Source: Macrostomum hystrix (taxonomy: Eukaryota > Animalia > Platyhelminthes). Taken from it: a DNA stretch of 64,000 bases. Below are positions 3,317 to 39,124 of this stretch, piece by piece. The stretch is from NCBI GenBank assembly GCA_950097015.1, contig CATNEN010000034.1, positions 4,526,001 to 4,590,000 of the forward strand. Direction: 5' to 3'. The notes beneath the pieces are model-generated. The model was not told where the DNA came from. It did not search any database and was given only the letters and a program-made list of their open reading frames with translations. The translations under genes were made by a program, and so were the position numbers. Each line of letters opens with the position of its first letter. Positions within the stretch are counted from its first letter, which is position 1.

Positions 3317-3807
3317 CTATAAAATGGGGGTTTAGGAAAAAATAAACGCAAATATAGCACACGGATTGAGACAGGTGGTACGCGAAGGAAAGGTTAACAT
3401 TGCGCTGCGGCTTCTGGGGTCATCATAAATAGTTTTTTTATTATCTGTTTAAGATGAGGAATTAAAAAATGGTCAATTGCGCAAGTCAGCAATAGGGGTT
3501 GGTTTGATAAAAGAGGGATTGATAAATACTTTCTTCAGTCGCGCAAATGAGAAGAAGTCTGTACGCTATTCTTCTCTTTGTATTTAAGGAAAAGGTGCTT
3601 CAGAAGGTAAAAAGATAAGCGCGGCGTATTTGCGAATGATGTTCGAGTAAAAACTTCCGGGTCTAGGATAAGAACAGGTAGGATATAAACAGGTATAAAA
3701 TATCTTTAAGGATTTTTTATCCTCCTCAAGCCTCTTCAGGTCTTAAGATGTTACTACGGGCCGATAACTGCATTTGGTTCCTCTTCCAAAACTAGTAAAA
3801 ATAGATT

Positions 3808-5989: not shown

Positions 5990-6815
5990 TTGAGCAACCT
6001 TCTAGATCATTGGCAAACCTTTCAGTTACTTGGACAACCTTCCAGTCCCTTAGGCAACCATATATTCATATTGACAACCTTCCTTTCACTTGGGCAACCT
6101 TCTATTCACTTCATCAAACTTCCAGTCACTTAGGCAACCTTCCTGTCACTAAGGCAACCTTCCAGTCACTAAGGCAACCTTCCTGTCGCTCATGCAACCT
6201 TCCAGTCACATAGGCAACCTTCCTGTCACATAGACAACCTTCCAGTCACTTAGGCAACTTTCTATTCATATAGACAACCTTCCAGTCACTTAGGCAACTT
6301 TCTATTCATATAGACAACCTTCCAGTCACTTAGGCAACTTTCTATTCATATAGACAACCTTCCAGTCACTTAGGCAACCTTCCAGTCACTAAGGCAACCT
6401 TCCAGTCACTAAGGCAACCTTCTAGTCACTTAGGCAAACTTCCTGTCACATAGACAACCTTCCAGTCACTTGGGCCTCTTTCCAGCCACTTAGGCAGCTT
6501 TCTAATCACATAGACAACCTTCCAGTCACTTAGGCAACTTTCTATTCACATAGACAACCTTCCAGCCACTTGGGCAACTTTCTAGTCACTCAGGCAACCT
6601 TCCAGCCACTTAGGCAACTTTCTAATCACATAGACAACCTTTCAGCCACTTAGGCAACCTTCCTGTCACTCAGGCAACCTTCCAGCCACTTAGGCAGCTT
6701 TCTAATCACATAGACAACCTTCCAGTCACTTAGGCAACTTTCTATTCATATAGACAACCTTCCAGCCACTTAGGCAACTTTCTAATCACATAGACAACCT
6801 TCCAGTCACTCAGGC
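5990..6815. repeat. Minisatellite, 20-bp unit (with 40-bp dimers)
   Basis: Unit ggcaaccttccagtcactta and variant agacaacc/ggcaactttctattcata. Confidence 0.95.
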
Positions 6816-9803: not shown

Positions 9804-10351
9804 CTTGAAAATTTTTATTGGCTAGATAAGGTTTAATCCAACTATACTAAATCTCTAAAGTCTGTCTGTCTGTTTTTTATTGGCTAGATAAGGTTTAATA
9901 TGTTGCTATTTTTAGAACATGATTGGGAGCCCCCCGTTTAACCACACCCTCGCTCTGTTCAAGCTATACTTAACATCTAGCAAGGACTTAAAAGTTTGAT
10001 TAGCCAATGAGAGTTAAGGTGCTGCTATTTTTAGAACATGCTTGGGAGCCCCCAGTTTAACACCACACTCGCTCTGTTCAAGCTATTCTGAACATCTAGC
10101 AAGGACTTAAAAGTTTGATTAGCCAATGAGAGTTAAGGTGTTGCTATTTTTACAACATGCTTAGGAGCCCCCAGTTTAACCACACCCTCGCTCTGTTCAA
10201 GCTATTCTTAACATCTAGCAAGGACTTAAAAATTTGATTAGCCAATGAGAGTTAAGGTGTTGCTATTTTTAGAACAACTTATAGGGACTCCCTTAGTTGA
10301 ACTATCCTCAGTCTAAGCACGTGACTACTCCTAGCCAATCAAATTTTCAAG
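9804..10351. mobile_element. MITE/foldback-like element: ~21-bp terminal inverted repeats enclosing three-plus ~119-bp tandem units
   Basis: Left end cttgaaaatttttattggctag (9804-9825) is nearly the reverse complement of right end ctagccaatcaaattttcaag (10331-10351). The internal unit is gctatttttagaacatg...gattagccaatgagagttaaggt. No TSD was found. Confidence 0.55.
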
Positions 10352-11985
10352 ATTATTAAAAGCAAACACTGAACACTAAAATCTGAATCCTTGGAGACAA
10401 GCTTGCAGGCATGCGATCTAAACGAACAATTACTTATTTAAATTTGAACTAAAAACTACAAATCTATACTAAGAATGTACTAAAAGCTCATTAGAAAATA
10501 TATTCTTAAAATGAAAAAAGCACATAGATTCTCCTAGGTACGTTCAATTTCCAAATAAGTACTAGTTTAAATTTTTCAGCATAAATTAATATGATGCTTC
10601 TACAATCTAAAGTATGAGTGTAATGCTATAATATAATTTACTATAGTTTACTAGTGTCATTAAATCGATAAACATTGCTGCGATTCCCTCACGTTCCATG
10701 GCGGTGATCAGTGACAACCGACCACTCCAGACCGATGCTTGTGTAAAACAAAATTTCGTAACGATTTTTTGCAAACAAACTTAGAAATCTAAGTTCTTTC
10801 TGCATTTTAAATTAGCTTATTTGTTTAAGATTTCGTATAGAAAAAATATGCTATCTAATCTGTGACTTGGTTAGTAGAAAATTATTTCATCGAAAAGGAA
10901 ATATTCGAGGGAAATCAATGTGAGATTGTGACGAATTGAAATTGGTTGTCTAAAAAAGTGTTTAACAGAGTTGCACGTAGTTTCTAGCTAATTTCACTGG
11001 ATTTTTTATTTTAGATTATCTGTAAGAGTTTAGGAGAAAACTAATGGGTCAGTATTTTTGGGATTTCGGATTTTTGGAAATTTCGGAATGGTAAAATAAA
11101 GAAAAAAATCGGGACTCGATCTTAAAGATTTTTAAGGGAGTTTTTTTCTCGAAAAACTAGTTGCCTAAGCCTTTGCTTTGTGAGGAGAAATGCTGTATTA
11201 AAAACGAGCTATTCTGTTGTATAATCCTACAGAAGTAGTAATTTTCCTAATCTAAATCCGAGGAACAGCATCTTACGAAGTGGCAGCGCATGCGGCAACG
11301 AATTAGTGTCGCCCTGCAGCGGCAGTGACTGCCCATAGACAGTCGCTGTGTTGGCGCAGCGGCGGAAAAACAAAATGAAATAATTAGTAATTCACTCACA
11401 CTTTTTTATCTGGCAATAAACTGACCAATCTACTCACACTTTGGTTAGTAGTGTGTTAGTAGTAATAAACGCAAATTAAATTAAAGTAAGGAGAAAATAG
11501 CGGCATCGTGAGTAGAAATGCGAATATTGCGCAGCGCCAGTCAAATGATGGCAGATACATGATTTGGTAGCCGGAAGTTATGATGAAGCATTCGATTATC
11601 GTTTTGTGACCCGGTCGCATATGCATATATATGTATGTACATAATTAGCAATACCTTCACCTATTTCGGTTTGATCAAATTGCTAATCGTGCCTATATGA
11701 GTTTTTCTATTCCAGCTGTATTAGTTAAATCAAGCCGCTATACAAACAGTCACTTACTGGGTCAGTACCCGTGCCGCTAATGCAGGCGCACACACTTCAG
11801 ATATAGCCAACGTGAGCACACTTAAAATATCTGTTTGTCTCGGATAAATATTGGACAATATCTGGATGCTTGAAAGAAGAAACCTAGCTCAATTCGCTAT
11901 CTATTTTTTGTCTAAAATGCATACATTTTTTTCCTTACAATAGCGGTCCGATCGATTTAAATGTCGCGGTCAAGATCACACTCAC

Positions 11986-12591
11986 CCAGCTCCTTGGTAG
12001 TGAACTCAATGATGCTGTTATTCTTGGCATTCACCGAGCTGGCATTGGTGGTGACAGAGTTCACCTTCAGCTGGTACTTGGTGAACGGCTTCAGACCACG
12101 GATGGTGGCCCTGATGAGTCTGTCGCCAGCCCTGGGGTCGGGCCGGTTCGGCACTCCCTCCATCTGGATCCAGTTGTGACTGGCGCCAACGCTGATGGCC
12201 GCCTCCTCCCGATAGCTGATGGTGTAGGAGCGCACATCCGGGGTGACCGACTGGCGAAACTCGAGCACTGCCGAGCGCGGCTCCAGTTGAACAACGCGAA
12301 GGTCAGTCGGTGGCTCCGGCATCTTCAGCACGCGAACCAGCACCATCCACTGGATGCGGCCCAAGCTGTTCTCAGCGACGCAGGTGTAGTTCTCATCGGC
12401 TTGAATGTCCGTGAGGCGGAGCACGTTCTTGCCTACAACCGACCTCTCGTCGAGATCCACTCCGTGAGAATCGAACCAGCGGACTACGGGCATCGGGGAG
12501 CCGACGGCGATGCACGTGATGTTGGCGCTGCTGCCGGGAGTGACCTCCACGTTGGACGGGCGCACAGAGAAGTGCGGACTGATTGTGCGAA
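11986..12591 (-). CDS. Lar: Exon, Ig3 plus FN3 repeat 1 (VRTISPHFSVRPSNVEV...NYTCVAENSLG...MPEPPTDLRV...GLKPFTKYQLKV...TTKEL)
   Basis: Acceptor ccccgcag at 12592-12593 and donor GTGAGT at 11985. It is 606 nt, phase 1-1. I-set C-W-C and FN3 GLKPFTKY motifs are present, and it is GC-rich. Confidence 0.96.
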
Positions 12592-12744
12592 CTGCGGGGC
12601 GTGTGTGAAATCAGGTAGCGGAATGAGAACTGTGCTCACCTGGCGTTAGGTACAGTTCTATTGCCCGGCTGTTGAAAGAGCGCCAGCTATTGACCATGGC
12701 AGGGGCCGGCAAACTTATGCGCCTCGGGCTAAAGAGAGTCCAAG

Positions 12745-13325
12745 AGATAATAAGAGATTAGACTGGTGAGAGATGAGACACTGGAAAGATTAGACTGGTG
12801 AGAGATGAGACACTGGAAAGATTAGACTGGTGAGAGATGAGACACTGGAAAGATTAGACTGGTGAGAGATGAGACACTGGAAAGATTAGACTGGTGAGAG
12901 ATGAGACACTGGAGAGATGAGACTGGTAAGAGATAAGACACGGGAGAGATGAGACGGGGAGAGATGAGACACTAGAGAGATGAGACGGGGAGAGATGAGA
13001 CAGAGGAGAGATGAGACAGAGAAGAGATGAGATATGGAAGAGATGAGACAGGGAGAGATGAGATTTGGGAGAGATGAGACAGAGGAGAGATGAGACAGAG
13101 AAGAGATGAGACAGAAGAGAGATGAGATATGGAAGAGATGAGACAGAGGAGAGATGAGACAGAGGAGAGATGAGACGGAGGAGAGATGAGACAGGCGAGA
13201 AATGACACAGGGAAGAGATGAGACAGAGGAGAGATGAGACGGAGGAGAGATGAGACAGGCGAGAAATGACACAGGGGAGAGATGAGACAAGAGATAGATG
13301 AGACAAGAGATAGATGAGACAGGGA
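12745..13325. repeat. GA-rich minisatellite (gagagatgagacag family, 15-31 bp units)
   Basis: Direct inspection. The same family occurs at 29110-29820 and 51840-52590. Confidence 0.95.
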
Positions 13326-14529
13326 GAAGTATTGAAATATGCCTTGATCACCAGGGCGGCGGAGTCAGGATCAGGATGGCGCGCCTCAGTTTGCCAACCC
13401 CTACTCGATGGTGCAACAGTCATATTCTAGCAGGTACCCTTTATTAGACAATGGAAACACGAACCACAGGTAAAAGCTCCGTGGAGTTTTCTTTGTAAAA
13501 AGCGCATGCAGACACTTCAAACTGCGTTTTTTTGTTGCGCTTATTTTTAAAAGTACACTTTCACTATTAGGACAGCGGAATCTACTGCGGAGACAGGGCA
13601 AGACTAAAGAAGTGGCGGAATTTCTTCAGGAATTCAACTGCTGCATGGCAGAGTCCGGGAAAGCAGAGATTCAAGAACGGAGACTCAAAAGCCAAAAAAT
13701 CATACTTTTTAGTCTTAAAAAACAGTTGAAATAGCTTTGTCAGCCAAACAATAAGGCATAGACCGACGAGTGTATTCATGTAATAAGTATGCATAATAAT
13801 AAAGAAATGATCATTTTGTATGTTGTATGTGGTCACAGCCCCTCTTAAATCTCTAATTGTTTCTGAATCCTACCACAATATATGCTAATAAATGATTACT
13901 TCAATATTTATAATATGATTTCAGAGCAAAACTGGAAAATCTGAATTTCATTGGCCATAAAAACTTTTTGTCCTAAAACACTTTTTTATTTTATGAGCCT
14001 GCGAGAGCCATAAAAAGTCGATGATATTGTTAAACGCTAAAAAATGGCTTAAATAAGGCTAGACAATTAAATGACAACTTTGCTGTGCTATAGCCTAGGC
14101 CTCATAAATCTTTGTCAATGAGTAGGAATTCTCTAGCTGATAAATATTTTTTAATACTAACAATTAAGAAAACCAATAAGAAGTGACAGAAGTAAAAATA
14201 TCAAATTAAACAAATAGCTGCCTATGCCGACAAAGATTTCTAAACGATATTTTATAACGCATAGATAAATACAATAGATCAGATTTTACTAGTTATAAAA
14301 TTCGTTGATTTAATAAATAAAATAAATTCAAATGTTAGTACGAATAATAATATGAATAACAACTGTCTGATAACAGACCCAGAGATAGCTAGTAGATAAT
14401 TCACTATAGTTTACTATTCGAATTTCAGCGTCTGCACCAGAGCTTCCAGTATTAAATTCACAACTGATAATAAGCTCGCTAGAGAGTAGAAAATGTTTTG
14501 TAGCCGAGTCGAACAGGTACAGTGTTGAA

Positions 14530-15410
14530 GAGTATTGAGGTAGAGTGGTGGATCACTGAGGGTGAGTATTGAGGGAGAGTGGTGGATCATTGAGGGAGAT
14601 TATTGAGGGAGAGTGGTGGATCACTGAGGGTGAGTATTGAGGGAGAGTGGTGGATCACTGAGGGTGAGTATTGAGGGAGAGTGGTGGATCATTGAGGGAG
14701 ATTATTGAGGGAGAGTGGTGGATCACTGAGGGTGAGCATTAAGGGAGAGTATTGAGGGAGAGTGGTAGAGCATAAAGGGAGAGTGGTAGATCATTGAGTG
14801 TGAGTGGTAGATCATTGAGGGTGAGTGGTAGATCATTGAGGGAGAGTGGTAGATCATTGAGGGAGAGTGGTAGATCATTGCGGGAGAGTGGTGGATCATT
14901 GAGGGAGATTATTGAGGGAGAGTGGTGGATCACTGAGGGTGAGTATTGAGGGAGAGTGGTGGATCATTGAGGGTGAGCATTGAGGGAGAGTATTGAGGGA
15001 GAGTGGTAGATCATAGAGGGAGAGTGGTAGATCATTGAGGGTGAGTGGTAGATCATTGAGGTCGAGTGGTAGATCATTGAGGGAGACTGGTAGATCATTG
15101 AGGGAGAGTGGTAGATCATTGAGGTCGAGTGGTAGATCATTGAGGGAGAGTGGTGAATCATTGAGGTCGAGTGGTAGATCATTGAGGGAGAGTGGTAGAT
15201 CATTGAGGGAGACTGGTAGATCATAGAGGGAGAATGGTAGATCATTGAGGGTGAGTGGTAGATCATTGAGGGAGACTGGTAGATCATTGAGGGAGACTGG
15301 TAGATCATTGAGGGAGACTGGTAGATCATAGAGGGAGAATGGTAGATCATTGAGGGAGAGTGGTAGATCATTGAGGGAGACTGGTAGATCATAGAGGGAG
15401 AATGGTAGAG
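14530..15410. repeat. Minisatellite, 21-bp unit gggagagtggtagatcattga
   Basis: Direct inspection; gives the 7-aa periodic ORFs (MIYHSPS). Confidence 0.95.
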
Positions 15411-15807
15411 TAAAGCAGCACTTTAGCCAAATGAGACATCTAGAGGCTACTGTCTATTGTGGGTTAGATTCGTATATGGCACAGATAGCCATCTAGTAGA
15501 TTTAGCGAGGTCAATGAGACTTGAGTAAAGAAAGAAAGCAAATGAAAATGAAATGAAAAATATGAGGCTTGGAGAATTTCAAATTGTTTTTAGTACTTGG
15601 TGAAGATTGTCGGGCAAGTTATGATTAATATGATTTATAATAAGTAACAATTATTACAAAACGAAAAAAATATGTTCAGATAATTATAGACTTCAGAGAA
15701 AAACTCAATGCAGTTTATCTAACGGCGTAGGCACAAAGCTGGTAATGCGAATATGACCCACATGGTATTTCATTCCATTGTGTGTGGCTCAGGTAAATGC
15801 GACATAT

Positions 15808-15950
15808 TTAGGCTATATCGTTATTAATTGTTACTTTACAGGTGATTAGCGGTTGTTTCTGCTTCTTCATTGTTTGACAAAGCAAAGAAAGTATCTGAAC
15901 AGAAATTGAGAGAGAACTAAAAAAAGCGGCAGTATTTCCATTTTTATCCA
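15808..15950 (-). CDS. Candidate alternative terminal exon after Ig2 (DKNGNTAAFFSSLSISVQILSLLCQTMKKQKQPLITCKVTINNDIA*)
   Basis: Acceptor tctgttacag at 15951-15952 lies downstream of a pyrimidine-rich tract. The phase-1 frame is open for 46 codons, with a hydrophobic stretch followed by KKQK. Confidence 0.28.
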
Positions 15951-16128
15951 CTGTAACAGACCAATAGAAGCGATTTTGTTAAAGGACCAAGTGGAATAGA
16001 GGGAGGGAGGCAGAGAGAGATGAAGATAAGGTGCGGGATACGGATGACAGGTTTGTTACGTCTTGAATGAAAGTTATTTATGTATTTTATTTCCACGAGC
16101 ATTATTACGGGCTGTTGAACTGACTTAC

Positions 16129-16134
16129 ATTTGG
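16129..16134 (-). CDS. Lar: Candidate 6-nt microexon CCAAAT at the Ig2-Ig3 junction (meB position)
   Basis: Context catttttgcccttcactctctctctcctcgtttcag|CCAAAT|gtaagt. In frame: FVR-A-K-F-RTISP instead of FVR-V-RTISP. Confidence 0.7.
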
Positions 16135-19100
16135 CTGAAACGAGGAGAGAGAGAGTGAAGGGCAAAAATGAACAAACTTTGAACCTTGAGTTCTGTTCTT
16201 CATAACAGAGAACATTGTATAGAGTAAATATCATGATTTAAAGTGCATTCTCGCAGCGCAACAGACACTTTGTACTCGTATTAGACTAATATCAACAGGA
16301 AACTCTTGAAATATTCACAAATCCGATGCAGCCAAATGGCAAGTTTTGGCACAAATAATTAAAAAATATAATTATAACATTGACAAAATCGAAGCGGTAC
16401 TCACTTTTGAAGCCAAGTGAAAAAAAACGTTGAAAAAAACAAAGAGTCTTGTGAAATAAATAAAGTCTGTGCCATACAAAGTTATGCATTAATAGTTTCT
16501 TGTCAACCGACGTGTTCTATTTTTAGACGGGGTAATCCACCAGAAAATATGTACAATAGAAGGGGTAAGAGTTTGGCCGCGCGGGATTGGTGCACATAAG
16601 GCGAGAGATGTACATAAGGGGACAGGAATGTAGTCAAGAGAGTGTGTGGATGGGTGCTGATTGGTTCTGGTTTACTCGCGAGTCAAGTGTACTTCAAGCT
16701 TCTGTTCTCAAAGGATATTTGCTCAACCGTAAATGAGCAATGAATGATGGATTCATCCAGCAGATATCGTAGTGATTGTTGTATGTATTTATATCAAATC
16801 TGTCTATAGACCACATTTTTAGGAGAAAACACTCGGCCAAATCACAGCGCAGCCAATACTCGTATGATATTTAATATTGAATCCGACTTTCTGTTTAAGA
16901 CAAACAATGTGTGGAATAGTACTATGCTATGGCAGTGTGTAAATTTCTTGTGACATTCCAGCACTCCAGCAGCAGCTCAGTTGACAATATAGAAAAAATA
17001 TTAGCTCGTAAACTAATTCAATTTAAAATAACAAATAAAAAGAAATGCAGCATGCTTTTCATAGACAGGCCTGCATTTAGGTATGGGTTTCTGGCTTTCG
17101 TACTTGGACCTTGAGGACTCCAACTCGTGGCGACTGAAAGTTCGGTTGTTGTCCATTATTTAACTGAGTAAGCAGATGGTCTTGTTAAATTAAACATTCT
17201 ATTGGAATACTTGGCTGGTAGGTTTCATTGATCCTTTGTGTACTTCAGTGACTAGAGTTGGTGAGTAAGAAGCAAAAATAAAAAATTATGGAACATGTAT
17301 TCTTGGTATCTGACTTAATGAAATCTACCTTAGCTAGCCAATAGTATAGGATATTTCCAATTTTGCCATCAGCCTACGCAGCACCATTGTCCTGTGATTA
17401 TCATTCAGTCCGCATAGCGAAAAAAAGTAGGATACAAATGTAACGAAAACAAAGTTATTTATTTTGAGCATAATTCCAACTGACGACACACTATGAGTTA
17501 AGATACATATGGGCCTTTTTCATGCCTTCATATTTACTCGTGCTATGAATCGCTTTACACTATCCTAGCCTGCCTCCCGAAGGAGAACAGAGAAGAGGGT
17601 TGAGTAGGGTTGAGTAAGGCAGCAGACAGAAGGAGTGGCTCTTCTGCATAGAACTGTAAATGTAGGAGAATGGACTCAAGCGAGCCAACGCCCTCTTCAG
17701 TGCGTGAAGCGGTTCTGCAAGAGTCAGAAATTGAGCGAGAGGCAGGGGCGAAAAGCCCTGGAAGAGAAATGCGTGTGCGCGCGTGTGAAGGAACTGCTGA
17801 CACTGAGACCCTTCTCGACATTGAGAAGCTATGACGCAATCAGCAGCCAGCTAATCAGGCCCCAAGCCTGAAAATTCGTTGCTTCAAGAATTATTTTCCC
17901 TCCCCACTTTGGTCTGGAAATATTCGAATGAATCTCCAAAGAGTTCCTAGTTTAAACGGTGGGAAATCTACAGCATAAATTTGCTGGGCCATTTCACCAT
18001 AGCTTATTTTTGCTCTATATGGCAGGTAAAAAAACAAACAAGACCAACTGGAGTAGGTACCGTGCTTGCGTGACTGGCATAGGCTCGAGGACCTCGCCAT
18101 AGTCTCTCCTGTCACTCTTCCCCAACTCTCTTCAAACCCAATGAGACATGAATATCGAAAATTGAGACACTGTTCTATAATAGAAAAGCCATTGATTCTT
18201 TTCTTTTATGTATTTTCTCAGATTGGAATCTGCCAGTGTGTTCTGTAATCCCACATATTTTTCGCTTAAAAAAACTACAGAAGGTACGTGGCCTATAGTC
18301 TTGGTTGCACCAGGGGGAGCTTGTGGCCCCAAGAGGATCAGTGGCAGATCGGCACTATTGTCTCTGAGACTAGATTTATAGTCTCTTCTATAAATTCTAT
18401 TGAGAATATATTTTTATTTTATCTATTTAGTTATTATTTCGGTGGTAAAGAGGGTTTTTAGGTAGCAGACCGGAGAATTGAGGTTAGAGACTAGGTCGAA
18501 AGAGCATAACCAAGCTGAATGCTTAGCAGTTGACAAATTTTTCGGGTCCACATCCGGAGACGAGAGGAGAAGCTGCGGGCAATCGGAAGTGATTGCGTAA
18601 GAGTATTAGCCAAGCCCGAGCCAATGTCTCTCCGTGCCCAGGACAACTAATTCACTTTGTAGCGCAGACTAATAACAAAGGCAGAAAAATGGTGAGTTTA
18701 ACACGACCGTGAATCGCAGTTCCTGTCCCAGCCTTGTCAGTCTGACTATTGCCTGTCAGCAGAAATCAGTTCCGTGTTTCTGATGCAATACTGCGTAAGA
18801 AAAGTTTTAGTCGAGGCAGCACTTAAGTTTTGTTAACCAGATTACAATTTCTGTGCTGCCCTTACAATCTTATCCCAAATCAGTGGGCTGCAATTCATTT
18901 GTAAACTGTTCAGCTCACAACAAACAATTCATAGCGTCATCGCACAATGCCGCTTCCTGAAGATGCACCGCTTCTAAAATACCTTTGACTAGCTATATGC
19001 AGAAGTGAGTTCCAGGTGCCGGGCATGTTATGAAGAAAAAATGTGGCTGCTCTGCTCAAAAAAGACATCCTATGCTCTGACGGCCTAATTAGTGTTAGCT

Positions 19101-21781
19101 CCGGCTCTTGTCTCTGAGTCCTCCCCTGCTTCTTCTGCTCCCATCTCCTTCGCCGTCTTTGACTGCAACTCTTTAATTAGGTTCGCGGCGGGGCCGAGGT
19201 CAGGTTGTCGCTATGGGAAGAGCACCCATAGGGGCTGATCTCAAGCCTATGTTTCTGCTGAGCAGTGCTCAAATAGTTCAGCGCCGGATTCTAAGCAAGC
19301 TCCTGCTTTAGAAGATGCGCAGTCTTGCACGACAGAAATTTTATTTCCAGGTCACAATTTCGCGGGACTATTTGGTATGCGAAGGTATGAAGATATTTTG
19401 AATAACATGTTTTTTGCTTTTCTTCTGATTAACAGTAGAACAGTGGGAGCGATTTCCCCCCCCCCGAAAATTTCCGTGTTGCACCCTAACGTAGCAACGC
19501 AAGCACACGAAACTAAAAAACAATGGCCAACTTTTTGTTGCGCATCTTCTTAAATAAGAAACAAGTAGCCAGCTTTTCTGACCGTCGAGATATTCAATGG
19601 TTCTGGCCGAAGGTCGGATTTTTCCTATAAGTGCTAGTGTATTTCATACACCCCTATACACGAATTTGCACTGCGCCTCAGCGCGGCCTTGTCAGGCCTT
19701 CAAAATTTATCAGCATGTCACTCGAATGTGCCTGCATCATCTGTGTCCTCGGTGGTCACCTACCTTTATCTAGACGGACTGCTGGACCTTCAATGGCTAC
19801 AACAGGTGGAAATAGGCCACTATGGACACCCTGACACGAATTTCACCGATCAAGCCTAAATATTAGGCGCAGCTCAACCACAGGACACCATCGCCTAGTC
19901 TGTCAAACAAACAGTCACTACCCATCGCTGTTAGCATTCGGGCGCTGCCAAAATTTTTTTCAAGGAGGCCCTTGGTATAAAAACGGCCGGCTGTCCTACT
20001 GTTAAAGGTCGTGAACATATCTAGAGAGACAAATAGACAGGCAGAAATGTACGGAGACAGGTAGATGGACTAATAAAAAGAGTGCAAGGTTAGACAACTT
20101 CCTAATAACAAATAATTTACACATGGCTACTTTCAATATGGCAGTCCCTTGTCCTCACCTACCCTCTCTAGCTCTGCATGGGATTCTGTAAGTCAGCCTC
20201 ATCAAAGGGATATAACAGCCTGTTTATCCTCTCGCCAAGTGCGCCCTTTCACTCTCGCTCACCCAGCAATCTCCGCCCCAGCCTTCAATACCTATGCCTG
20301 CATGCTCTTATCAGGTAGAAAATATCGCAACCGTTAATCATTCGAGTCGAGTCCCTCCTTCCTCCTGTCCCCGGCCTCATCCATCTTTGATCCCCCTTTA
20401 TTCTGATTCTTGCCTCGCATTCATGCTCAGAACTTTGCAAAGCAAAGAGCTGAGCTTAATTCGCAGCTTTAAAAAATAACCAAAAAATAAGCTAGACATG
20501 CCACATCAACACCAAAGAATGGCTTGATTATACGATGACGTAAGACTCTAAAGCTTGGTGGAAATCTGAATTCGAATTTCATTGGTTAAGGCCAATCACG
20601 TGCTAGGGTTGGGGGAGGAATTTTTCTAAAAATAGAAACAAATGTCAACCCTCCTAGCCAATCAAATTCCGAACGCTCTCCTTTCTTAATTTGGAGTCTT
20701 GTGTCCTCTTTTCGCTAATTAAATTCCTTGATCAGAACAAATGAGTGCAAAACTGCGATTAAATCGAGTCCAGGACCTATGAGCTGGTCGCTAGTTACTC
20801 AACTGCTAAATATTTTCAGTTCACAGCACAAAAAACTCAGTAAAGAAGCGAACATAACTGCCAAGCATGCCATGCTCTGTGCGTCCTGTTTTCCTCTGTC
20901 AGCCGGCTGAGTGCCAGGCCGCATAGAGAATTGTTTGAGAGCGCATCACAGCCCAAACAGCTGCGGTCAGGCCACTTCCGATGTGTCAATTTGCCAATTG
21001 GCGAGACGGCGAGAGGTATTACACGTCAAGAGCTGGAAACTGAGGCACACTCGCGCACTGCTCATGCGGCCATGCTGCTCAAAAACAGACACACTATTAT
21101 TACGCATCTTCGCTTATTCCTCTCATGGAGGGGACAATTGATTAATTTAATTTTTATCCCCTCGATGCTGAAATGGTTATTTACCGCCATACTTCAGCAG
21201 CCATTCCAATGTGAGGGCGACGTCGTCTGCGTGTGTATGTATGCGTTTGGTTGTGTGTGTAGCATTGGTTGGTGAAGCCTACGCATTCTTAGAAAAAGGC
21301 TCTGCTAGGCGCGGGCGCGCAGGTTAGCCAGTTGTTTTTGTTAAAATTCAGACAGAAAAGGTAACAAAAGTTTACAACACGACAGGCCAGGACTAATAGA
21401 TAGAAAATAAGATAACACCTGGACTTTTAATTACTGAGGTGTAAGTAAGAACTCTAGGTTCCAAGCCTAGAAATCTCAGGTGTATCCTATTGCTCCTTAT
21501 TTCATTATTTTTACCTCGTAATTGAAAAACTTCTAACAAAAATACACGTGAGAAAAAAGTCTAACTATGAACACAATAATACAACTGTGCTGCGTATGTA
21601 AAAATAACAGTGAAACAAAGTTGATTAAAGTGAATTTAACGTTGGGGCATAGTGGGAATTTTGTATCTGTAATAAAATAACTATTCTGACATCTAAACAA
21701 ATATTTAAAAATTAAATTGAAAGTTTATGAGAGCTATCTAAGTTCAGAATGTGTCCTATTAAGAAAATTTGCGTGCCTCAC

Positions 21782-21892
21782 CTCTAACAAACAGGTGCGC
21801 GTCCGTGGACTCGGCCGAGCCGAATTCGTTCCTTGCTATGCAGGCGTATTTGCCCTCGTCCTGAGTTTGAGCCTGAGCAATCTCCAGGTCCC
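21782..21892 (-). CDS. Lar: Exon, C-terminal half of Ig2 (GDLEIAQAQTQDEGKYACIARNEFGSAESTDAHLFVR)
   Basis: Acceptor cacaacag at 21893-21894 and donor GTGAGG at 21781. It is 111 nt, phase 1-1, and contains the DxGxYxC motif. Confidence 0.95.
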
Positions 21893-21954: not shown

Positions 21955-22572
21955 GGCATAGAAGCAGGGGTCAGACAAGTGGGTCATTGTGGGGCATGGA
22001 TGGAAGTAGGGGTCAGACAAGTGGGTCATTGTGGGGCATGGATGGAAGTAGGGGTCAGACAAGTGGGTCATTGTATGACATGGATGGAAGTAGGGGTCAG
22101 CCAAGTGGGTTATTGTGGGGCATAGATGGAAGTAGGGATCAGACAAGTGGGTCATTGTGGGGCATGGATGGAAGTAGGGATCAGACAAGTGGGTCATTGT
22201 ATGACATGGATGGAAGTAGGGGTCAGACAAGTGGGTCATTGTGGGGCATAGATGGAAGTAGGGATCAGACAAGTGGGTCATTGTGGGGCATAGATGGAAG
22301 TAGGGATCAGACAAGTGGGTCATTGTGGGGCATGGATGGAAGCAGGGGTCAGACGAGTGGGTCACTGTATGACATGGATGGAAGTAGGGGTCAGACAAGT
22401 GGGTCATTGTATGACATGGATGGAAGTAGGGGTCAGCCAAGTGGGTCATTGTGGGACATGGAAGCAGGGGCCAGCCAAGTGGGTCATTGAGGGACATGGA
22501 AGCAGGGGCCAGCCAAGTGGGTCATTGTGGGACATGGATGGAAGCAGGGGTCAGACAAGTGGGTCATTGTGA
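21955..22572. repeat. Minisatellite, 42-bp unit, ~14 copies
   Basis: Unit ggaagtaggggtcagacaagtgggtcattgtggggcatggat. Confidence 0.96.
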
Positions 22573-36838: not shown

Positions 36839-38283
36839 CCAGTTCCAGCTGCCTCTGGTGCGTTTATAAGGGTCGCTCTATTGGCTAGCAAAGGTGCAAC
36901 GGCTGCTAAATAGTAAGCCGCTATGCAATGAGCAACTGTAGCTGCCGCTGCCACTACGGGGTGCTACAGGAGAGAGTTGAAGAGTGGGCGCGTGTGTGAG
37001 ATTGTAAAATCTGAAAACTCCCACACCGAGCCACTGCACCCCGGAGGGTGTAGGATTTCCATCCCACTAACCTCCGCTTCGCTCCCATGGGGAGACGAGG
37101 GATTTCTGTAGTTCTGTGGCCGCCGAAGGATATTTGAGGGATCCGGCATCCAAGGTTCCTTTCCAAGCCAGCTTTTATCCAGTCAGCCCTCTAAATCTCT
37201 TTCTTCTGCGCTCTTAAACTCTTTAAAGCTGCCTCTCATATTTTTATCCTAGTTGGTTGCTTCCCCCATCTCCCATTCTCCTCTTAACCTAGGTTATCAA
37301 AATTTTGGCTCACTCTAACAAAAAACTGGCACTCCGCTGGTTGACCTCCGCGCTTTCTTCTCGGAATGAGGATGAGAAGTAGGGCAGACTGGGGGGATTG
37401 CTTCGCGCGAATTTCGTCTGATTCCGTCTGACAACTAAGCCACTGCGCCCACCAAAAGAACTCGATGCTCACTCATTCTCAGCCTCTCCGATCAGTTCAA
37501 ACTGGCCACTAGGAACAAATGAGCGATGAGCGGGCCCGGGCCCATGGGACCCCGCCGCTACCGGCTGTGAACAAAATAAAAATAGTTTAAGAGAAGACGT
37601 GCTGGTAAGGGAGATGAGAAGGGGCAGAGACAGATAGAGAAAGTGGATGCCAGGGCGGCGGTTGTGTTTGTCAGTGCGTGCTTGCTCTAGTTAGCGGCAG
37701 GCGCCACGGAGTCCCTGAGAACTGTGGCCATCTCAGCCATCCTTATGTGTCTGTGCGTGTGCGCGCGCCTGCCTTTAATCCAGCCCTGATCCCGAGGAAA
37801 AGCTTCCAAGCGACGCGAATGCCATATACGATAGCAGGCCGCTTCTTTGCCAACTTTCTCCGACAGTAGCGCCCAAGTAAGTAAAAAAGAACGTCATTGG
37901 AACTTAACGCTAGCAACAAAAAACCTCCTGCGACGGCCATGGAGGAGTTTGGAGGAGGAGAATACGGGCGGGGGCTTGGGCGGGAATTTGCGACCGCTGA
38001 AATCCCGGTGGCACGCGAACGCGCCCAAGCCCTGCTTAATTAATTATGCATCGGTCACCAACCCCCGGCCCGGGACCAACTGCAAAACCGATGAATGCAG
38101 CTAAGCTGTAGTGTCTTCTGCTGCTGCTGCTGCTGTTGCTGCCGTTTCAAATAAAGCCAAGAAAGAGAAGGACCGACTACAGCCAACTGTCTCACTTCCT
38201 TTAGTTCACTCTATCCGAACCAAACCGCAAGAAGATGGCATTGTGATCTGTTTCATAGCAGGCCCGAGTCTTTTGAAGTACTC

Positions 38284-38822
38284 CCTCAACAAAGACTCAC
38301 TCTCATCATAATCTATGAAATAGTATTTCGTCAACGCCTCGGCCCTCAACAAAGACTCACTCTCATCATAATCTATGAAATAGTATTTCGTCAACGCCTC
38401 GGCCCTCAACAAAGACTCACTCTTATCATAATCTATAAAATAGTATTTCGTCAACGCCTCGGCCCTCAACAAAGACTCACTCTCATCATAATCTATGAAA
38501 TAGTATTTCGTCAACGCCTCGGCCCTCAACAAAGACTCACTCTCATCATAATCTATGAAATAGTATTTCGTCAACGCCTCGGCCCTCAACAAAGACTCAC
38601 TCTCATCATAATCTATGAAATAGTATTTCGTCAACGCCTCGGCCCTCAACAAAGACTCACTCTCATCATAATCTATGAAATAGTATTTCGTCAACGCCTC
38701 GGCCCTCAACAAAGACTCACTCTCATCATAATCTATGAAATGGTATTTCGTCAACGCCTCGGCCCTCAACAAAGACTCACTCTTATCATAATCTATAAAA
38801 TAGTATTCGTCAACGCCTCGGC
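38284..38822. repeat. Near-perfect tandem array, 60-bp unit x9
   Basis: Unit ggccctcaacaaagactcactctcatcataatctatgaaatagtatttcgtcaacgcctc. A two-SNP variant occurs in copies 3 and 9. Confidence 0.98.
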
Positions 38823-39124
38823 TAATTTTTTTAGGCGCCAGTTGCTGTTGAAACATCGCCGCTGACGATTGCCGAAGGTCCGTTATGGACTCTTGAGTGA
38901 AGGAAAATTTAATTGCAAAATTGCACAACAAACATAACAAGGTTAATTAATAAATAACTTATGGCACAAATGACAGGCATTCAATCAATGTCACACAAAA
39001 AACAGATTGAAACACTTTTTTATAAAAATGCTTTTCTGGCCAAAACATCAACCACATTTATCGCTATCAATCAGCTAACGTCTGTCTGATGGTCTGATAA
39101 GAGGAGATATTACGCAATGCAGAG

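Follow-up and report, generated by a model that had tools for sequence, protein, structure and literature searches.

A conserved candidate 6-nt microexon at the Ig2–Ig3 hinge of a LAR-type receptor phosphatase gene in Macrostomum

The long intron that separates the Ig2 exon from the Ig3 exon in a LAR-type gene of Macrostomum hystrix contains a 6-nt unit, CCAAAT, which has strong splice sites on both sides, keeps the reading frame and is conserved with these sites in Macrostomum lignano. We interpret CCAAAT as a real, mostly skipped alternative cassette microexon that would lengthen the Ig2–Ig3 hinge by two residues, a reading to which we assign a probability of about 0.6. Cross-species conservation strengthens, and does not prove, the view that this is a microexon at the position of vertebrate meB; RNA-like contigs show the skip junction only.

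The hinge intron and its 6-nt unit

Within the window (the whole stretch of DNA that was analysed, 64 kb), minus-strand open reading frames carry Ig and fn3 (FN3) domains across four exons. The 201 residues encoded by 11987–12589 have the ectodomains of PTPRS (PTPsigma) and PTPRD (PTPdelta) as their best PDB matches (E 9e-33), and the orthologues carry the names protein-tyrosine-phosphatase or Lar. Judged by its predicted ectodomain, the gene belongs to the type IIa RPTPs (LAR/PTPsigma/PTPdelta); the phosphatase domains lie beyond the window. The features of the hinge region are as follows.

21782..21892, minus strand: upstream constitutive exon, second half of Ig2; ends ...FVR + G, phase 1, donor gtgagg
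16135..16175, minus strand: 3' splice region with ttcag acceptor, alternating CT-rich polypyrimidine tract and one TGC; 42-nt AG-free zone
16129..16134, minus strand: candidate 6-nt cassette microexon CCAAAT; phase 1, Val to Ala-Lys-Phe
16121..16128, minus strand: 5' splice site gtaagtca; the same 8 of 8 bases in M. lignano
11986..12591, minus strand: downstream constitutive exon, Ig3 and first FN3; starts TT CGC ACA ATC

The Ig2 exon ends at 21782 as ...TTTGTTAGAG/gtgagg (codons CTG TTT GTT AGA G), and the Ig3 exon starts at 12591 as cag/TTCGCACAATC, in phase 1. Between them lies a phase-1 intron of 9,190 nt (12592–21781). Residue 1 of the Ig3 exon aligns to chain residue 202 of PTPsigma/PTPdelta, in the block RRV(A/P)PRFS, immediately after the meB site. 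Its flanking exons place this intron at the position that the meB intron has in vertebrates. The 6-nt unit lies where a hinge microexon has to lie, intronic and flanked by the Ig2 and Ig3 exons, and keeps the frame (phase 1, no stop). Its placement at the meB position, as claimed by the original prediction, is thus borne out both by the frame of the unit within this intron and by the point at which the Ig3 exon alignment begins.

Read on the minus strand, positions 16134 to 16129 of the window are CCAAAT, in the context ...tttttgcccttcactctctctctcctcgtttcag/CCAAAT/gtaagtcag, and are bracketed by an acceptor AG at 16136–16135 and a donor gtaagt at 16128–16123. All elements that had been described from the letters of this genome, namely the pyrimidine tract, ttcag, CCAAAT and a perfect gtaagt, are present on this strand. 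In the 20-nt stretch ahead of the acceptor region, 18 bases are pyrimidines, the closest AG upstream is at 44 nt, and a single TGC lies ∼31 nt 5' of the unit. The final three bases of the exon (AAT) match the donor consensus poorly. Inclusion would create the codons GCC AAA TTT (G+CC AAA T+TT) and the peptide F-V-R-A-K-F-R-T-I-S, with no stop, whereas skipping yields F-V-R-V-R-T-I-S; the net gain is two residues. The change from R-V-R to R-A-K-F-R is the one originally proposed, and it fits the phase-1 flanking exons, the borders of which are confirmed by spliced RNA-like contigs.

To see how unusual such a unit is, the intron was scanned for AG followed by 3k nt (k up to 10, i.e. up to 30 nt) and GTRAGT, with no stop in phase 1. 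The CCAAAT site was the sole match in the 9,190 nt and, when at least 80% pyrimidines were required upstream, the sole site across both strands of the 64-kb window (128 kb). By a rough splice-site score, which was built from approximate consensus frequencies (general knowledge) and serves for ranking only, the unit came first of 189 AG...GT candidates, and its acceptor outscored the acceptors of the neighbouring real exons. The second-ranked candidate in the window, at 12640–12657, is without a counterpart in the M. lignano locus.

The introns of this gene are filled by minisatellite arrays (12753–13324, 14530–15409, 21961–22571, 6016–6815 and 9901–10276; units of 16, 21/34, 42, 20/40 and 119 bp), which result in long spurious ORFs on both strands. 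A 60-bp tandem array at 38206–38940 (minus strand) has an ORF that repeats ...YYFIDYDESESLLRAEALTK, and an M. lignano orthologue model (P0152) begins MMRDEYYFIDYDKKEARITQGPE. From these two observations, at least one unit-like segment seems to be used as coding sequence that splicing joins to the Ig1 exon.

Conservation in Macrostomum lignano

Whole-library HMMER search led to a close relative, P0005 (PAA53983.1) of Macrostomum lignano, encoded at a locus (L001) of assembly GCA_002269645.1. The conservation comparison covers one other species, and L001 begins inside the intron, downstream of the counterpart of 20159–20173. Exons of the window and L001 share ∼82% nucleotide identity and introns are mostly unalignable; for the Ig3 exon, identity is 88% at the protein level and 55% at fourfold-degenerate sites, which shows that neutral positions have changed a great deal between the two species. 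At 1.25 kb upstream of its Ig3 exon, L001 reads ...tttttttcctcttttcag/CAAAAT/gtaagtcacc, with CAAAAT at 3335–3340. The aligned block is one further feature of the window.

16121..16146, minus strand: conserved 26-nt island (acceptor, exon and donor); 24 of 26 bases identical to L001 3323–3348

This block has the form TCCTC(G/T)TTTCAGC(C/A)AAATGTAAGTCA, and the sequence on either side of it does not align. The last 12 nt of the 3' splice region (TCCTCGTTTCAG) are identical at 11 of 12 positions. In a sensitive intron-versus-intron comparison, the island (E 7e-5) was outranked by a single HSP, and it is colinear both with the Ig3 exon and with three further short islands; none of 100 shuffles of L001 gave a comparable match. 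As fourfold sites of the adjacent exon are only 55% identical, the 92% identity of this intronic island is not neutral. The conserved islands make up <1% of the Ig2–Ig3 intron and the candidate had been picked from one genome, blind to conservation, so by our own estimate its chance of falling on an island by coincidence is ∼1–2%.

Within the exon, CCAAAT and CAAAAT differ by one synonymous change: it affects a third position (GCC to GCA), and as the L001 Ig3 exon likewise starts TT, the M. lignano unit would read GCA AAA TTT, again Ala-Lys-Phe. When the same candidate scan was applied to the M. lignano intron, the CAAAAT unit ranked top. Its pyrimidine tract is also long (19/20). The TGC that the original prediction had stressed fared less well, as it occurs once in the window, at the distance given above, but no TGC lies within ∼60 nt of the M. 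lignano acceptor. In this one other species, splice sites and coding potential are thus conserved above the neutral level, as in conserved cassette exons in general. Conservation that runs from the pyrimidine tract and acceptor through six coding-compatible bases to gtaagtca is what would be expected of a selected, used microexon.

Annotated M. lignano proteins all have the skip form YVRVRTISPHF (YVRVRKISPHF in the paralogue), which counts little against inclusion because 6-nt exons escape gene predictors. Whole-library HMMER and word searches recovered only two M. lignano orthologue models and one paralogue, all in the skip form, and no Logan transcript ORFs of other Macrostomum species. P0091, P0151 and P0056 represent a second, more divergent LAR-like paralogue of M. 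lignano, which is ∼57–63% identical in Ig3.

Conservation in the intron is highest at another island, 18578–18616 (minus strand), which matches L001 467–506 at 37 of 40 positions around the core TTACGCAATCACTTCCGATTGCC. It is without an exon-like AG...GT frame and may have a regulatory role within the intron. Smaller islands, also colinear, occupy 17787–17806 and 15838–15857.

RNA-like contigs and competing explanations

A run search found no sequencing runs recorded as RNA. However, contigs from three assemblies of one study (X2, X3 and X4; depth 9–16, tissue unstated), compared over the repeat-free interval 10300–12752, cover just 11986–12593, with zero depth in the intron on both sides. Before 11986, they run on into the exon at ∼9362; beyond 12593, they go on with CTAACAAACAGGTGCGCGTCC... 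(plus strand), the end of the Ig2 exon, and positions 12592–12593 coincide in the contigs with the last AG of that exon. As coverage is confined to the exon and the loose ends are the neighbouring exons, these contigs are RNA-like. In all three, ...TTTGTTAGAG is joined directly to TTCGCAC, the skip junction, such that the 3' end of the Ig2 exon was recovered as a loose end joined to the Ig3 exon. X1 contributed merely a 222-nt exon fragment. Together, the X2–X4 contigs confirm the Ig2 and Ig3 exon borders and identify skipping as the major form.

The original prediction had called for comparing the two junctions in RNA. One of them, the skip junction, is present in three RNA-like assemblies; inclusion of the 6 nt was seen in none of these, which come from one study and whose contigs keep the major path only. 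With a single path kept, a depth of 9–16 and tissue unstated, minor or cell-type-specific inclusion is compatible with the contigs.

Skipping alone is also what would be seen if the unit were a conserved intronic element that is never included as an exon. Such an element might act as a decoy or pseudo-exon, drawing U2AF and U1 so that excision of the long intron is aided or regulated; alternatively, it might be an enhancer or protein-binding site that resembles splice sites by accident. The intron does hold other colinear conserved islands without exon form, 18578–18616 being an example. However, the conserved block at CCAAAT stops exactly at the functional limits of the 3' and 5' splice sites and its only change within the six nucleotides is synonymous; moreover, the intron gave no Rfam match and self-BLAST found no repeat copy of the region within the window. 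We consider a non-included element possible, although unlikely. One specific version is disfavoured: classical recursive splicing needs GT right after AG, and here CC follows, so that a recursive splice site is unlikely and use of the acceptor would retain six bases in the mRNA. At ratchet points, AG/GTAAGT are directly juxtaposed. The unit resembles recursive splice sites in its long pyrimidine tract, in the proximity of cag and gtaagt and in its conservation within a long intron, but in the flatworm the two sites are six bases apart, the first two of these bases not being GT, and no 5' splice site is regenerated.

A 9-kb intron supplies many AG/GT pairs, the pyrimidine tract is in part a simple (CT)n run, and several introns had been screened for such motifs, all of which would favour functionless splice-like motifs that arose by chance beside a CT microsatellite. 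Against this stand the uniqueness of the candidate in 128 kb and the retention of 24 of 26 bases in M. lignano, compared with 55% identity at fourfold sites; chance is already disfavoured, and we regard it as very improbable. It is somewhat less far-fetched, yet still improbable, that the true meB-like exon of the intron is instead a 15-nt candidate at 20159–20173 (minus strand), cag/AGCTAGAGAGGGTAG/gtgagg, which is in frame and would place E-L-E-R-V before Val. Its donor is of the kind used by the real Ig2 exon, and its peptide recalls the vertebrate E-L-R-E. In contrast, its pyrimidine tract is weak, its acceptor scores 1.65 on the rough scale compared with 3.5 for the CCAAAT unit, and it is missing from the major RNA form. 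The 15-nt candidate and the 6-nt exon are also not mutually exclusive.

If CCAAAT is a cassette microexon, as we favour, the spliceosome would define it in some cells, most plausibly neurons, via its two strong sites and include it. Inclusion would swap the hinge Val for Ala-Lys-Phe, which adds two residues and introduces a basic and an aromatic side chain. If vertebrate meB is a guide, the insert would alter how Ig2 and Ig3 are placed relative to each other, and hence the binding of extracellular partners. Overall, gene family, position and frame stand as originally interpreted and conservation has been added to them; inclusion in RNA and a conserved TGC did not emerge.

Relation to vertebrate meB and evolutionary meaning

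In vertebrates, meB is described as a four-residue extension of the Ig2–Ig3 hinge that gates ligand binding (PMC12598525, PMC12075705, PMC10883964), and the hinge microexon as selecting the postsynaptic partners of the LAR family and shaping circuits and behaviour (PMC12075705, PMC13080001, PMC10883964). The flatworm unit has in common with meB of PTPRD, PTPRS and PTPRF the gene family, the Ig2–Ig3 intron, phase 1 and the junction at which the Arg closing Ig2 meets the Val-Arg with which the Ig3 segment begins; both are microexons, the flatworm one putative, that keep the frame and make the hinge longer. In sequence, they are not alike: meB has 12 nt and adds Glu-Leu-Arg-Glu before a Val that is kept (compare YVRELREVRRV in P0154), whereas the flatworm unit has 6 nt and replaces Val by Ala-Lys-Phe. 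Inclusion, neural regulation and ligand effects belong to vertebrate meB, whereas the flatworm unit is known from its sequence. A role as a linker-length switch for ligand binding is therefore carried over from vertebrates by analogy, and neural specificity and homology to meB are likewise conjectural. We know of no described flatworm counterparts of the meB-dependent partners (Slitrks, IL1RAPL1, IL1RAP and SALMs).

Comparison with eMIC (Srrm234/SRRM3/4)-dependent neuronal microexons of bilaterians gives a similarly mixed picture. Fly eMIC exons are characterised by long pyrimidine tracts rich in UCUC, by AG exclusion zones and by a UGC close by (PMC8797185). Like these, the flatworm candidate is very short, keeps the frame and belongs to the gene of a synaptic adhesion receptor, with a long alternating-UCUC tract, an AG exclusion zone of ∼40 nt, a strong 5' splice site and conserved flanks. 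Unlike them, it has UGC near the 3' splice site once in the window and not in M. lignano, so that a conserved UGC, as in eMIC/SRRM-dependent microexons, is lacking across the two sequences.

Literature searches turned up no account of meA or meB in animals other than vertebrates. At the hinge itself, inserts do occur elsewhere. ELRE is found at the same R/V position in a fish PTPRS (Solea, isoform X7, a database isoform), and a LAR-like isoform X3 of the nemertean Lineus longissimus (P0192) has a 20-residue insert, DKPVIFKPIIRYLRLKREKD, at residues ∼263–282. The latter lies at the meB position of a lophotrochozoan LAR, exactly between YVR and VRRVPPHF, but at ∼60 nt it is no microexon, its sequence is unrelated, and it is known as a database isoform model only. 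All other invertebrate representatives among those listed are without a hinge insert. The inserts of Solea and Lineus longissimus show that the hinge tolerates inserts elsewhere, which fits a hot spot and suggests that alternative inserts arise repeatedly at the R/V junction.

Neuronal microexon programmes are reportedly rewired almost completely between phyla (PMC8797185), which makes an independent origin at a permissive hinge likelier than common descent. That the flatworm 6-nt exon, the nemertean cassette and vertebrate meB all stem from one ancestral bilaterian alternative exon is, in our view, improbable; if it were true, the extracellular splice code of LAR-RPTPs would be older than vertebrates and than the known meB-dependent ligands. 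Transgenesis and RNAi are available in M. lignano, a laboratory model, and the question of the microexon is therefore directly testable. Given the reported rewiring between phyla (PMC8797185), a conserved flatworm microexon at the same hinge would mean either that this is a rare, deeply shared site or that it is a recurrent hot spot for the tuning of linker length.
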